Shown piece by piece: positions 44,775-55,218 of a stretch of 64,000 nt of DNA. The notes under the pieces were generated by a model that ran no database searches, had not been told where the DNA came from, and saw nothing but the letters and a program-made list of their open reading frames with translations. The stretch is from the sequence record NC_071039.1. One strand, 5' to 3'. The number at the start of each line of letters is the position of its first letter. The stretch's first letter is position 1. Position numbers and translations under genes: made by a program.

Positions 44775-44851
44775 CCCTCGGTAGCTCAGTTGGTTAGAGC
44801 GCGCGACTCATAATCGCTAGGTCACTGGTTCGAATCCAGTTCGAGGGACCA
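44775..44851 (+). tRNA. tRNA-Ile2 (CAT anticodon, lysidine type)
   Basis: Cloverleaf with encoded CCA; anticodon arm GCGA-CTCATAA-TCGC as in bacterial tRNA-Ile2; A73. Confidence 0.85.
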
Positions 44852-44873
44852 ATTTTAAGATGTTGTGCTTTTA

Positions 44874-44958
44874 GCCCGAGTGGTGAAATTGGTAGACACA
44901 GGAGACTTAAAATCTCCCGCTTCGCAGCGTACCGGTTCGAGTCCGGTCTCGGGTACCA
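44874..44958 (+). tRNA. tRNA-Leu (TAA)
   Basis: GGAGA-CTTAAAA-TCTCC anticodon arm, long variable arm, CCA. Confidence 0.95.
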
Positions 44959-45008
44959 AACAAAAGATATAAATACTTAACAAGATAGGAAACTATTCTA
45001 AAATTAAA

Positions 45009-45084
45009 TGGCTAGTAGCTCAGTTGGTAGAGCAAATGACTGTTAATCATTAGGTCGTAGGTTCGAGTCCTACCTAGCCAGCCA
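45009..45084 (+). tRNA. tRNA-Asn (GTT)
   Basis: Cloverleaf, T1-A72, G73, CCA. Confidence 0.95.
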
Positions 45085-45110
45085 ATTACACTTTGTTGTA
45101 TATTCAATAT

Positions 45111-45186
45111 GCCGTCTTAGCTCAGCTGGTAGAGCAACTGACTTGTAATCAGTAGGTCGTGAGTTCGAATCCCACAGTCGGCACCA
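45111..45186 (+). tRNA. tRNA-Thr (TGT)
   Basis: Cloverleaf, CCA; T5:T68 and A52:C62 mismatches. Confidence 0.9.
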
Positions 45187-45255
45187 ATTTTAAATAACAG
45201 TTGTATCTAAAGAGATACAATAGTCTAAATAAAATATTCATATAATGTTTCAAAC

Positions 45256-45332
45256 GGGACTTTAGCTCAGTTGGTTAGAGCGCGCGACTCATAATCGCTA
45301 GGTCACTGGTTCGAATCCAGTAAGTCCCACCA
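45256..45332 (+). tRNA. tRNA-Ile2 (CAT), second copy
   Basis: Positions 8-65 identical to the first copy; acceptor stem GGGACTT/AAGTCCC; CCA. Confidence 0.85.
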
Positions 45333-45382
45333 ATTTTTATATACAAATCAAACTATACTTAAACTATATAATGAATGAATAT

Positions 45383-45467
45383 GCCCGGTTGGTGAAATCG
45401 GTAGACACAGGAGACTTAAAATCTCCCGACGAAAGTCGTGCCAGTTCGAGTCTGGCACCGGGCACCA
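45383..45467 (+). tRNA. tRNA-Leu (TAA), second copy
   Basis: Same anticodon arm as the first copy, different acceptor and variable arms; CCA. Confidence 0.95.
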
Positions 45468-45693
45468 AACTCCTACAAAAGGAACATATTATAGTATGTT
45501 CCTTTTTTATTATGATATTTTTATTATGAATGAAATAATGCATATATCTGCCAACACATACGTAATAGAATATCGCGTATTAAACAAGTTAGTAGTCACT
45601 ATAAAAAATAATAGATCTTTCACATTATGGATACATTTTGATATCGGTGCATTTTCTATAGCATGGAAATACAATGCAATATAGAATTAAAAA

Positions 45694-45855
45694 ATGAAAT
45701 ACATTATTAATTTACAATACTCAACAGAAGTAATATATATGCCTTGTTTTAACATATTATCGCTATGCGATAATAGATCTGTTACTATCCTTTCTATTAC
45801 TATGATATTTAAGATAAGATACTATTTACATCCGATGTACCGTTATATTCTATAA
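45694..45855 (+). CDS. half-length member of the small paralog family (not in ORF track)
   Basis: MKYIINLQYSTEVI..., 53 aa. Confidence 0.45.
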   Translation: MKYIINLQYSTEVIYMPCFNILSLCDNRSVTILSITMIFKIRYYLHPMYRYIL

Positions 45856-52182: not shown

Positions 52183-52184
52183 TA

Positions 52185-52214
52185 AAACATTGCCCGCTAA
52201 TGCGGGCAATGTTT
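52185..52214. terminator. intrinsic terminator
   Basis: AAACATTGCCCGC-TAAT-GCGGGCAATGTTT. Confidence 0.75.
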
Positions 52215-52288
52215 TATTGTATTTTTATTTTTCTTATGCTATTATACAAATAATAAATAATGGACGTTTAATAACAAGGAAATGTTTT

Positions 52289-52519
52289 ATGAGTTCAGAA
52301 TTTGATATAGATGACAGCGGACTTGCTGAAACCCACGAACAAATTGTAGAAAAAGCTGTAAGTAAAATACGAAAAGAAATGGCAAGAAATTCTGGCTATA
52401 CCGAATGTATAGATTGCGGAGAAGAAATAGGAGAAGAAAGAAAACGTATACTACCAAGTGCAACAAAATGTGTGGAATGCCAGTCGTTGTTTGATCTGAG
52501 AAATAAGTTATACAAATGA
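52289..52519 (+). CDS. traR: TraR/DksA C4-type zinc finger protein
   Basis: CIDCGEEIGEERKRILPSATKCVECQ; acidic N-terminus (DIDD); AAGGA SD. Confidence 0.8.
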   Translation: MSSEFDIDDSGLAETHEQIVEKAVSKIRKEMARNSGYTECIDCGEEIGEERKRILPSATKCVECQSLFDLRNKLYK

Positions 52520-53342
52520 ATCTATCATTATTATGTAAATTATCTAGAGTAGTTAGAAATAGTACAATCGTTGTTTCTATTGAATATTCTAATTTTTTTA
52601 TTTCCATTTTTAATAAAATATATAGTTTAATAAGAATTGACATTGTTTCTAATTTAGCTACATGTTGCTTACTACCAACTGTTATAAACCTATTATCGTT
52701 TTGTATAGAAGAAAGAAATGAAAATAAATCTAAAAAAGATAATAACACTAAACAAACTTAGTGAGATTATATTTAGAAAACAAATATAACCCGAATGTCT
52801 CTGAATTGCATTATAACGTATTAATAGATATAATATATTAAGAATCTAAGCAATAAATATTTGCATATAAGAAGGATTCTAATATGTCATATAATCCAAA
52901 TTTCAATACCTCTATTATAGGATTATCGTATAATTCTATAAAATTACATATAGTAGAACATGTACAAAAAGACATAAAAGGTAATACAGTTTACATTATA
53001 TCATTTGTAAATGATTTTGGATTTATTTTTGCTAAGGTAAAAACTAAATATGATCCTAAAACTGTCTTATAATGCACGCCAAATATGCATAGAACCAAGT
53101 ACCATATATACAACCATATATACATGTATATGGGTCCGGGGAGAAAAAGGGATAGTTTTGTATAGACGTATGATTTATGATACAAGATCGATGAGTATAG
53201 GTAATTATGATTATACAACTTATATTTCGCATGAAATAGGAGGCTTAGGCTGGACCAGTTATAAGAATTTAAAAAAATGCTAGATTTCGTTGTTATAAAA
53301 CAGTATACTAAACACTCGACACATTAACTAGCAGAGGTAAAC

Positions 53343-53492
53343 GTGGATAATATCAAATCGTGCAAATGCGCACATGATTTCCAGGACAGTGTGTACGGCA
53401 AAGGTAATCGTGTGCATAACGTGTTTACTAAGGGCTATCGTTGCACTGTTTGCGGTAAAGAAATTATTACTTCTTCCACTGGCAAGAAGTAA
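53343..53492 (+). CDS. tiny Zn-ribbon protein (GTG start, not in ORF track)
   Basis: MDNIKSCKCAHDFQDSVYGKGNRVHN...YRCTVCGK, 49 aa; GAGGT SD; own terminator at 53500-53525. Confidence 0.75.
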   Translation: MDNIKSCKCAHDFQDSVYGKGNRVHNVFTKGYRCTVCGKEIITSSTGKK

Positions 53493-53615
53493 AATATAAA
53501 AAAAGGGCACAATGTGCCCTTTTTTAATAGTAAGAAACAAAGTAAGTCATGCATTCAACTATCTATAATATACACTGTGCATTCTAATACACAGTGTATT
53601 GTTGCGAGTAATTAA

Positions 53616-53837
53616 ATGTCAACAACGCCTAGGGGAAAGAAAACTAAAATAACATGCAATAATATAGAATGTAATAATGTATTCGAAGTAAGAATTGCCG
53701 ATGTTAAAAGAGGTTGGGGACTATATTGTTCTAAGTCTTGTAAACAAACTGCACAAGAGCAACAGCGGCAAATGATAAAAAAATTATCCGGAGAACATTT
53801 GTTACCGAAGAATAAACGAAGAAAAAAGTATTGGTAA
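53616..53837 (+). CDS. small Zn-binding protein
   Basis: CNNIEC...KRGWGLYCSKSCK. Confidence 0.7.
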   Translation: MSTTPRGKKTKITCNNIECNNVFEVRIADVKRGWGLYCSKSCKQTAQEQQRQMIKKLSGEHLLPKNKRRKKYW

Positions 53838-54301
53838 GAGGTATAGTATGAGTTTAATACTAAACTATTCAATTTGTGCAAATACTACAACCATAACTTT
53901 TTATATTTTCGGATTAAACATTAAAAAGGCATGGGTATACGTTACAAAGTCAGATAAGTATGGTAGGTATTTGTACGTATCTCAAGACGGATGTATGGGT
54001 GTCTTTCCTGAATGGCAAATATAATTAAAATGAAACCGGTATTGTACTATGTAGGTGATAATCCCAAAGGGGCATTTTTGTGCGAAATTTATGGCAAGGA
54101 ATACCCATTTATTAATAATGAAACTAGATTTATTAAAGTTAATTCTATTTTTTATATATCTTTTATATCTGCTAAGTATACATATATAAAATTTCTAGTT
54201 AGATATAGATTTGTTACATGGAGGTTATACGACACTGATATTTATATTTCCTTTAGTAGAGCTATGACATCCGTTGAGCGGGAAATTAATAAAATAAGAG
54301 G

Positions 54302-54444
54302 AGTTTAAAAAATGCGTTATTTTGCACGTTTGCATTATGCTATACGCAAGTTTGCAATAACGTGCAAACGCATGTATAACGCTAATACAGCTAGCAATAC
54401 AGTGCATAAAAACATGTACAGCATACTAGCGTTACAACGCATAT
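54302..54444. repeat. GA/TC/GG/CC-free island E
   Basis: 143 nt with none of the four dinucleotides; shares TGCAAAATAACGCAT (reverse strand) with island C. Confidence 0.8.
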
Positions 54445-54606
54445 CGTTGAACCATAAATGTATATATGTCTGGAGCAATATAGTATTCTTGACAGTTACT
54501 ATCGATACCTTAATTACATATCACATATATAGAAAAAGTTTGAGAACTGGTTTAGAGTCGTGTAATTTTTCTTATGTACACGAATTAGTTTAGAAGGATA
54601 TTAGGT

Positions 54607-55218
54607 TTGATTAAGTTAGTAAAACCCATTGCATATTATGGACAGAAATTTGGTATCGCTGTTTCGGGCGGTATTGATTCTATGGTTGCATTGTCCTTCT
54701 TAAAGAAATATCCACAAAATAACTTCGATGTCTTTCATGTAAACCACGGATCGGAGTATGATATCAAAGCAGAGCAATTTGTGAGAGATTATTGTAGCGA
54801 CAATAAAATAAATTGCCATGTATATTGCATTAACACAAAAAAACCAAAAGGTTGCAGTTGGGAAGAACATTGGCGAAACGAACGATATAAATTTCTGCAC
54901 TCTCATGAATTAGAAATCATGACTGCACATACACTAGACGACAACGTAGAGACGTGGTTGTTTTATAGTATGCACGGTTCGCCTCGTATCATTCCGTATC
55001 GGAAAAAAAATGTCATCCGACCGTTTATGCTTACTACAAAAAACGAATTTAAAAAATATGCGAAAAGTAATGGTGTACAATGGTTAGAAGATCCTAGTAA
55101 CCGAGACACCAATTTTAATAGAAATCAAATTCGACATAATATAATTCCTCAAGCACTTAAAGTAAATCCAGGATTGTTTAAAGTGATTGCAAAAAAAGTA
55201 AGAGAAGAGAATGAATAA
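54607..55218 (+). CDS. tilS: tRNA(Ile2)-lysidine synthetase, catalytic domain only
   Basis: PP-loop AVSGGIDS, HVNHG, RNERY, TAHTLDDNVET, IRPF, EDPSN.D..F.RN.IRH; 203 aa; TTG start. Confidence 0.9.
   Translation: MIKLVKPIAYYGQKFGIAVSGGIDSMVALSFLKKYPQNNFDVFHVNHGSEYDIKAEQFVRDYCSDNKINCHVYCINTKKPKGCSWEEHWRNERYKFLHSHELEIMTAHTLDDNVETWLFYSMHGSPRIIPYRKKNVIRPFMLTTKNEFKKYAKSNGVQWLEDPSNRDTNFNRNQIRHNIIPQALKVNPGLFKVIAKKVREENE

Follow-up and report, generated by a model that had tools for sequence, protein, structure and literature searches.

Pseudomonas phage vB_PaeM_PA5oct, a jumbo phage of very high A+T content, carries a gene for a 203-amino-acid homologue of tRNA(Ile)-lysidine synthetase (mini-tilS) together with two genes for tRNA-Ile2 with the anticodon CAU, and this locus raises two questions: how a phage whose commonest isoleucine codon is AUA has that codon read in a host that hardly uses it, and how a gene on whose product AUA decoding would depend can itself be translated. 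The stretch of DNA analysed here (the window, 64,000 nucleotides of sequence record NC_071039.1) is the right-hand end of the PA5oct genome, positions 222784-286783 of the 286,783-bp record MK797984.1 (record coordinate = window coordinate + 222,783), a region shared by some ten Wroclawvirus isolates, nearly identical to one another, from Europe and Japan. Our analysis indicates that PA5oct probably possesses an AUA-decoding cassette of its own, in which mini-tilS has been purged of ATA, most likely because TilS must be made before lysidine-containing tRNA is plentiful.

Demand for AUA decoding in PA5oct

The PA5oct genome was rebuilt from 15 stretches, in which a simple open reading frame (ORF) caller predicted 373 genes occupying 84% of the genome. 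In this rebuilt genome, ATA is the leading isoleucine codon (3,717 of 6,678, or 55.7%) and is used 46.5 times per 1,000 codons; AUG is used 17 times per 1,000. The host, P. aeruginosa, uses AUA 0.9 times per 1,000 codons and possesses a type I TilS whose kobs of 0.32 per min places it with the less active orthologues (PMC12514573). AUA usage by the phage is approximately 50 times that of its host and exceeds that of Borrelia burgdorferi, at the high end of the bacteria considered in the same study (PMC12514573); therefore, about 50 times the host's AUA-decoding capacity is needed. Codons ending in A are also read by other phage tRNAs: Leu-UAA (two copies), Arg-UCU, Thr-UGU, Pro-UGG, Gly-UCC and Ser-UGA.

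A TilS homologue predicted to consist of the catalytic domain

The mini-tilS gene (54607-55218, plus strand), which GenBank lists as a tRNA(Ile)-lysidine synthetase gene, starts with TTG and has a GAAGGA Shine-Dalgarno sequence about 8 nt upstream. Its product matches the PP-loop family PF01171 (1.7e-36) and scores 131.4 bits against TIGR02432, the curated model of the TilS N domain (cut-off 93.6 bits; the next PP-loop family, TtuA, reaches 31 bits). A Pfam search returned no match beyond PF01171, and in particular no C-terminal TilS domain; PHROGs holds no family for the protein, giving weak matches to PAPS reductase and QueC only. The PP-loop motif SGGxDS takes the form SGGIDS (residues 20-25) and is invariant in 37 homologues, and the PP-loop, RxxRY, HxxDDxxET, RP, DxSN and RNxIR motifs of the solved TilS structures are all kept. 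The protein aligns to residues 26-228 of the 317-residue TilS of A. aeolicus, ending where the inter-domain linker begins. An AlphaFold model built with the 37 homologues (pLDDT 95.1) superimposes on A. aeolicus TilS with a TM score of 0.82, and its best Foldseek matches are 2E21, 1NI5 and 3A2K (TM 0.79-0.82), of whose length it covers 37-55%. This alignment to the N domain alone and this partial fold coverage indicate that mini-TilS, as judged from sequence and model, is the catalytic domain by itself, predicted to lack both the C-terminal domain CTD1 of type I and type II enzymes and the CTD2 of type I enzymes; the catalytic-domain-only TilS of 203 amino acids proposed in a first-pass annotation of the window is borne out.

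Published RNA-seq reports tilS transcription throughout infection (PMC7318152), and in four RNA libraries, all from a single study, contigs 3.3-3.6 kb long span tilS without differences, these being Logan contigs that report presence only and not level, strand or transcript ends. The long RNA contigs over tilS begin at about 53409-53420. Short RNA contigs with word depths 10 to 500 times those of their flanks, contig depth being an unreliable measure, lie at 53208-53509 and 52302-52452 of the window, where they cover the tiny annotated ORFs EST35_0427 and EST35_0428 and part of a DksA/TraR-like gene; these peaks may represent abundant small RNAs or a transcript start.

Two CAU tRNAs of predicted Ile2 type

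ARAGORN and Rfam agree on 12 tRNA genes in the window, and three of them have the anticodon CAT (44775-44851, 45256-45332 and 47384-47460). GenBank and the papers on phages MIJ3 and PA5oct give all three as tRNA-Met (PMC6892783; PMC7318152). Assignment of the first two to the Ile2 type is nevertheless well supported by their sequences: both have the anticodon arm of E. coli ileX at positions 28-43, including C29-G41, where the E. coli elongator metT differs in having U29-A41, and the best full-length matches of the second copy among 5,426 E. coli genomes are annotated as tRNA-Ile, at 87% identity. The first-pass annotation was thus right to read an Ile2-type anticodon arm in two CAT tRNAs, but it counted only two, having missed the initiator-like gene at 47384-47460.

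The two tRNA-Ile2(CAU) genes, both on the plus strand, are identical from position 8 to position 65 (58 body positions) and differ at 12 of the 14 positions of the acceptor stem, all seven pairs being kept: copy 1 (44775-44851) has CCCUCGG/UCGAGGG, with A73-CCA, and copy 2 (45256-45332) has GGGACUU/AAGUCCC. Identical bodies combined with differing acceptor stems would suit an enzyme whose recognition is confined to the anticodon arm and body. The determinants recognized by the E. coli type I TilS, C4-G69 and C5-G68, are a rule of that enzyme and not a universal one; both copies have C5-G68, and at 4-69 copy 1 pairs U with A and copy 2 pairs A with U. Phages Cassandra and 30-2, and isolates from three countries, carry the two tRNAs unchanged. 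Copy 1 begins with an unusual C1-G72 pair.

The third CAU tRNA (47384-47460, plus strand) is not of the Ile2 type. It has the C1xA72 mismatch of initiators and, at the foot of the anticodon stem, two of their three G-C pairs, with A29-U41 in the remaining position, and G11-C24 instead of A11-U24; it could be an initiator of the phage, or a tRNA-Met built to escape TilS.

Isoleucine codon usage of mini-tilS within PA5oct

The 15 isoleucine codons of mini-tilS comprise 2 ATA, 8 ATT and 5 ATC. The first-pass annotation had set this gene against one at 55327-55674 (plus strand, 115 amino acids, no family match), in which 12 of 17 isoleucine codons are ATA, and both of its counts are exact. Because ATA is the majority isoleucine codon of the genome, the second gene (71%) is ordinary and the contrast comes from tilS alone. 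The ATA share of tilS (13%) has a binomial probability of 0.0009 given the genome mean of 0.557 and is the sixth lowest among 258 genes with at least ten isoleucine codons (2.3%); tilS also stands at the 2.3rd percentile after regression on G+C content at third codon positions (GC3). The other low-ATA genes of PA5oct, which encode the major head protein (5/23), the head protease (0/13), an HNH endonuclease and an FtsH-like protease, avoid TTA, AGA, ACA and GGA too, the head protein gene having AGA at 1/21 and ACA at 0/38, whereas tilS uses TTA (4/11), AGA (3/10), ACA (3/7), GGA (3/9) and also CCA at ordinary rates. Its G+C content of 0.34 is near average and its GC3 is 0.30. Within PA5oct, the peculiarity of tilS is specific to ATA.

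The early genes of PA5oct sit in a 39-kb terminal repeat (PMC7318152), which lies outside the window (positions 1-39080 of the PA5oct record) and served as an approximation of the temporal classes. Compared with the rest of the genome, this region has a lower share of TTA among leucine codons (0.26 versus 0.51), of AGA among arginine codons (0.29 versus 0.50) and of ATA among isoleucine codons (0.45 versus 0.57), and a higher GC3 (0.32 versus 0.23); early-region genes lean less on the phage's own tRNAs. The proposal that tilS acts as a switch for a set of ATA-rich genes is not supported, there being no such separate class: ATA is the majority codon genome-wide and still makes up 45% of isoleucine codons in the early terminal repeat.

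The HNH endonuclease gene at 15297-16481 of the window (phrog_1314) has a GC3 of 0.50, is almost free of the A-ending codons preferred by the phage and looks like a recent mobile insertion.

Codon-specific avoidance of ATA across phage lineages

A word-based protein search yielded 743 relatives of mini-TilS, nearly all of about 200 amino acids and 45-55% identical, and IMG/VR, scanned with 37 aligned relatives, contains at least 529 viral contigs that encode one. The best 80 of these loci were analysed with 10-kb flanks; all 80 ORFs are 195-228 amino acids long, and dereplication at 70% protein identity left 48 lineages (median pairwise identity, 46%). For each degenerate codon, mini-tilS was compared with its surrounding genes by Mantel-Haenszel and Wilcoxon tests. 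Pooled over the 48 lineages, ATA represents 66 of 638 isoleucine codons in mini-tilS versus 4,689 of 15,352 in neighbouring genes; the Mantel-Haenszel odds ratio is 0.23, and 47 of 48 lineages have a lower fraction in mini-tilS than in its neighbours (Wilcoxon p = 4e-13). Second in depletion is a codon with an odds ratio of 0.75, and all others are at or above this value, the loss of ATA being taken up by both ATT and ATC. ATA is wholly absent from mini-tilS in 22 of the 48 lineages, and its fraction is the lowest or tied for lowest among local genes in 23 of the 48 loci.

The depletion is unchanged if only neighbours of at least 450 nt are considered. When the nearest same-strand gene of similar size was put in the place of mini-tilS, no depletion of ATA was observed (odds ratio 0.91, lower in 28 of 48, with uniform ranks). 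As a cellular control, a scan of one genome per prokaryotic species provided full-length tilS genes (encoding 320-518 amino acids) from Bartonella, Erysipelothrix, Halieaceae, Bacteroidota, Acidobacteriota and others, dereplicated to 24 clusters; these do not avoid ATA (odds ratio 1.52, below neighbours in only 6 of 24). In Erysipelothrix, tilS has 42-45% ATA versus 13-16% in neighbouring genes, and in the Bartonella apis group 25-28% versus 9%; such ATA-rich cellular genes may reflect the ordinary weak codon bias of a gene of low expression, or a feedback loop.

The prokaryote scan also found mini-TilS on contigs of metagenome-assembled genomes (MAGs) labelled as ten phyla, including Woesearchaeota and Promethearchaeota. 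Eleven of these genes had enough flanking genes for the test, and they too are poor in ATA (odds ratio 0.34, lower in 10 of 11). In a quick maximum-likelihood tree, in which one row was mis-sized by the ORF caller on a contig of 60% G+C, all mini-TilS proteins fall on one side of a branch (SH-aLRT 95), apart from the N domains of cellular TilS, and the MAG copies interleave with viral ones regardless of MAG taxonomy. The MAG contigs are probably phage contigs that were binned into MAGs, and the single branch and the interleaving therefore denote one phage-borne clade rather than repeated truncations. Avoidance of ATA in mini-tilS is thus well supported as real, codon-specific and phage-specific. 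The first-pass annotation had held that tilS avoids ATA and is translatable before the pool of lysidine-containing tRNA rises; the former is upheld beyond what other genes of PA5oct display, and for the latter the predicted pattern was observed, with phage mini-tilS poor in ATA and cellular tilS not.

Linkage of mini-tilS to CAU tRNA genes

Genes for tRNAs lie within 10 kb of mini-tilS in 69 of the 80 viral loci and within 100 nt in 31, the anticodon being CAU in 27 of these 31. After dereplication, 19 of 48 lineages have a tRNA gene within 100 nt, and 15 of the 19 have a CAU tRNA there, on the strand of mini-tilS; given that CAU makes up 12.7% of local tRNAs, this has a probability of 8e-11. 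The distance between mini-tilS and the adjacent CAU tRNA gene is often 6-64 nt. Typing the CAU tRNAs of viral loci by C29-G41 proved unusable, as only some of those adjacent to mini-tilS have this pair, and adjacency was used instead.

On the 428-kb NCBI contig BBPE01000624.1 (10001-10891 of the locus analysed), an ileX-type CAU tRNA follows mini-tilS by 53 nt. The mini-TilS of this contig has a C-terminal tail of 50 amino acids, and release-factor fragments (PCRF/RF-1), an MYG1 exonuclease and an M16 peptidase are encoded nearby; a huge phage and a giant virus are candidates for its source. A 113-kb IMG/VR contig (6334-19616 of the locus analysed) has mini-tilS inside an array of 20 tRNA genes, five of them CAU, and a tmRNA gene. 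No protein family is a consistent neighbour of mini-tilS, the commonest being present at 11 of 49 loci and absent from PA5oct, and therefore there is no sign among these neighbours of a separately encoded C-terminal domain.

Organization of the tRNA genes in the window

The two tRNA-Ile2 genes belong to a cluster of six, all on the plus strand: copy 1 of tRNA-Ile2 is followed by tRNA-Leu(UAA) copy 1 (44874-44958), tRNA-Asn(GUU) (45009-45084), tRNA-Thr(UGU) (45111-45186), copy 2 of tRNA-Ile2 and tRNA-Leu(UAA) copy 2 (45383-45467), and the putative operon ends with a hairpin resembling an intrinsic terminator (45477-45506, plus strand). Each tRNA-Ile2 precedes one of two diverged tRNA-Leu(UAA) genes, and therefore an Ile2-Leu unit appears to have been duplicated. 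A sigma-70-like promoter, TTGCAA-17 nt-TATAAT (44710-44738, plus strand), identified by consensus match only, lies 37 nt before the first tRNA; this distance leaves no room for a leader peptide, which rules out a leader-peptide attenuator before the operon.

Further along the plus strand are tRNA-Arg(UCU) (46412-46488), with an 11/12 sigma-70-like promoter upstream (46332-46360); tRNA-Pro(UGG) and tRNA-Gly(UCC) (47470-47629), next to the initiator-like tRNA; and tRNA-Ser(UGA) and tRNA-Ser(GCU) (48818-49002). A promoter with a perfect 12/12 sigma-70 consensus (48384-48412) precedes an ORF (48444-48803) and the two tRNA-Ser genes. Sigma-70-like sites are not in excess in the region (81 versus 86.8 in shuffled sequence), and only single strong sites are cited here. 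The 12/12 and 11/12 promoters fit the use of host RNA polymerase by the phage from the start of infection to its end, and PA5oct is known to rely on that enzyme (PMC7318152).

Proposed mechanism and alternative explanations

From gene and tRNA identities based on homology and fold, from the codon statistics with their controls, and from the adjacency of tilS and tRNA(CAU) genes in other phages, we infer as follows what the enzyme does, which tRNAs it acts on and why selection would have removed ATA. The six-tRNA operon with its two tRNA-Ile2(CAU) genes would be transcribed by host RNA polymerase from the host-type promoter; mini-TilS would adenylate C34 and add lysine, changing the anticodon from CAU, which reads the methionine codon AUG, to LAU, which reads the isoleucine codon AUA; and host isoleucyl-tRNA synthetase would charge the modified phage tRNAs, after which AUA could be read at a high rate. 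The need for such a cassette would arise from the rank of AUA as the commonest isoleucine codon of the phage, at about 50 times host usage, and from the slowness of the host's type I TilS. Because mini-TilS appears to lack the C-terminal domains that read the acceptor stem, it would read only the anticodon arm and body of its substrates. In a cell, TilS and modified tRNA would both be inherited; in an infection, TilS would have to be made from nothing at the minimal AUA-decoding capacity of the host. Since a tilS gene that needed AUA would depend on its own product, selection would strip from it the one codon whose decoding depends on that product. Avoidance of ATA in 47 of 48 phage lineages, and not in cellular tilS, is as predicted if tilS has to be read in the absence of TilS, and transcription of tilS throughout infection, with RNA contigs over the gene, is consistent with such bootstrapping. 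We judge this explanation of the purged gene probable, and the sequences make it very likely that the AUA-decoding module is real. Its description in the first-pass annotation as self-contained was sensible in pairing the Ile2 tRNAs with TilS but went too far otherwise, as host isoleucyl-tRNA synthetase and other modification enzymes would still be needed.

Several observations weigh against this reading. AUA is already read in the host, and ATA accounts for 45% of the isoleucine codons of early phage genes; therefore, ATA codons in tilS would slow its translation without stopping it. Strong expression could by itself select against the slowest codon in tilS. A type I TilS engineered to lack CTD2 is a poor enzyme (PMC11947777), and therefore a TilS composed of the N domain alone could be weak. 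In PA5oct, tilS is 9.3 kb from the tRNA-Ile2 genes and not adjacent to them, and the signal from this phage alone rests on 15 codons. All gene sets depend on our simple ORF caller, and each phage of the metagenomic loci is represented by no more than a 20-kb sample. On balance, the evidence fits graded bootstrapping and not a discrete switch, the dependence on the cassette being nearly genome-wide. A stronger version, in which a portable cassette of one-domain TilS and cognate CAU tRNA makes AUA the phage's own codon and the accumulation of TilS serves as a translational timer or gate for the AUA-rich bulk of the genome, is conceivable, and we hold it only tentatively.

Ordinary translational optimisation might also remove ATA if TilS is needed in abundance or early and sheds the slowest codon, its role as an AUA decoder being irrelevant. 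The major head protein and head protease genes of PA5oct are likewise low in ATA (5/23 and 0/13), early terminal-repeat genes use fewer codons of the phage tRNAs, and the GC3 of tilS (0.30) resembles that of the early class; but optimised genes shun TTA, AGA, ACA and GGA as well and tilS does not, only ATA is strongly depleted over the 48 lineages (odds ratio 0.23 versus at least 0.75 for every other codon), and tilS has the lowest or tied-lowest local ATA fraction at 23 of 48 loci, so that we consider optimisation by itself an improbable cause. Low ATA content as the residue of recent horizontal acquisition from an ATA-poor genome, or as chance, is very improbable, being already contradicted by the 48-lineage test, the cellular control and the tree. 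The MIJ3 paper did term TilS 'host-like' (PMC6892783), and the HNH endonuclease and FtsH-like genes of PA5oct combine low ATA with high GC3, as foreign genes would; tilS, however, has near-average G+C content (0.34) and ordinary usage of other codons, cellular tilS genes are not poor in ATA, and in a deep phage clade (median identity 46%), whose synonymous sites have been rewritten many times, ATA is yet depleted in 47 of 48 lineages.

The remaining alternative is that mini-TilS acts on another target, instead or in addition: host tRNA-Met, initiator tRNA or host tRNA-Ile2, with host CAU tRNAs re-routed to AUA or host translation shut off, or a role in tRNA repair or in protection from host defence. 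Its predicted lack of both discrimination domains would permit this, as removal of CTD2 relaxes discrimination at the acceptor stem (PMC11947777); furthermore, PA5oct encodes an initiator-like CAU tRNA of its own, whose anticodon stem is different, and no conserved protein partner is encoded beside mini-tilS. Yet many phages have a CAU tRNA gene right beside mini-tilS, PA5oct supplies two ileX-type tRNAs, the type I enzyme without CTD2 still rejected tRNA-Met (PMC11947777), and conversion of tRNA-Met would starve the decoding of AUG, which the phage needs (17 per 1,000 codons). We regard such a target as unlikely, somewhat more so than optimisation, and retain bootstrapped decoding of AUA through the phage tRNA-Ile2 genes as the preferred explanation.

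Comparison with known systems

Mini-TilS shares the PP-loop catalytic domain, motifs and fold (TM about 0.8) of bacterial TilS of types I and II (E. coli MesJ, 1NI5; G. kaustophilus, 3A2K; A. aeolicus, 1WY5), and the same chemistry, adenylation of C34 followed by attack of lysine, is expected from its sequence. It differs in lacking CTD1 and CTD2, in belonging to a separate phage-borne clade and in being encoded by a gene that avoids ATA, as cellular tilS does not. Nakanishi and co-workers reportedly found in 2005 that the type II TilS of A. aeolicus reads only the anticodon arm and body of its tRNA; mini-TilS would likewise rely on the anticodon stem (C29-G41) and not on the acceptor stem. 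Recent TilS enzymology covers type I, type II and long fusions only (PMC11947777), and our literature searches found no description of a TilS class consisting of the N domain only, nor of AUA avoidance in tilS.

Phage tRNA-Ile2 genes have long been known (PMC1524935). In T4-like phages, a T4-like vibriophage and Latilactobacillus prophages, a tRNA-Ile2(CAU) served by host TilS provides the same supply of AUA decoding in a phage richer in AUA than its host, and has been mis-called as tRNA-Met (PMC1524935; PMC13191261; PMC10688831). Lysidine has been measured on the vibriophage tRNA, with the host enzyme as its maker (PMC13191261). Those phages need the host enzyme, whereas PA5oct brings an enzyme together with two tRNA copies that have swapped acceptor stems. 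The TilS of the papers on MIJ3 and PA5oct (Imam 2019, PMC6892783; Lood 2020, PMC7318152) is the product of the same gene, 100% identical in protein sequence. These papers guess that TilS 'maintains host viability'; they draw no link to the tRNAs or to AUA codon usage, leave the missing domains unmentioned and call TilS unreported in phages (PMC6892783; PMC7318152), whereas IMG/VR has at least 529 contigs with relatives.

Phages that recode stop codons (bioRxiv 10.1101/2021.08.26.457843) follow the same logic, in that genes for decoding capacity are readable without that capacity: their recoding machinery is written in the standard code and their late genes in the new one, and in both systems use of the special codon differs between stages of infection. 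PA5oct differs in boosting a sense codon, with no stop codon reassigned, and its dependence is quantitative, without a sharp division into code-dependent and code-independent genes. What is new here is the test of ATA avoidance with its controls; the system itself is a structural and evolutionary variant of a known enzyme-tRNA system.

Implications

This analysis corrects how two genes, annotated as 'tRNA-Met' in a candidate for phage therapy, are identified. The one-domain TilS proteins form a large and previously undescribed class that bears on how TilS distinguishes tRNA-Ile2 from tRNA-Met and on the role of the C-terminal domain, and the small enzyme-tRNA pair could be a compact tool for engineering AUA decoding. 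The purge of ATA from tilS in phages and not in cells is a clean and testable signature of a bootstrapping constraint on decoding machinery. If the proposed mechanism is true, mini-tilS would be the first gene for a tRNA-modification enzyme shaped by avoidance of the codon that it enables, and its product would represent a third structural class of TilS, one that tells tRNA-Ile2 from tRNA-Met without a C-terminal domain; if the gate exists, it would set the time at which AUA-rich phage genes are translated efficiently in a host that barely reads AUA. For PA5oct, the putative AUA cassette would explain how a phage of 33% G+C is translated in P. aeruginosa, a host of 67% G+C.

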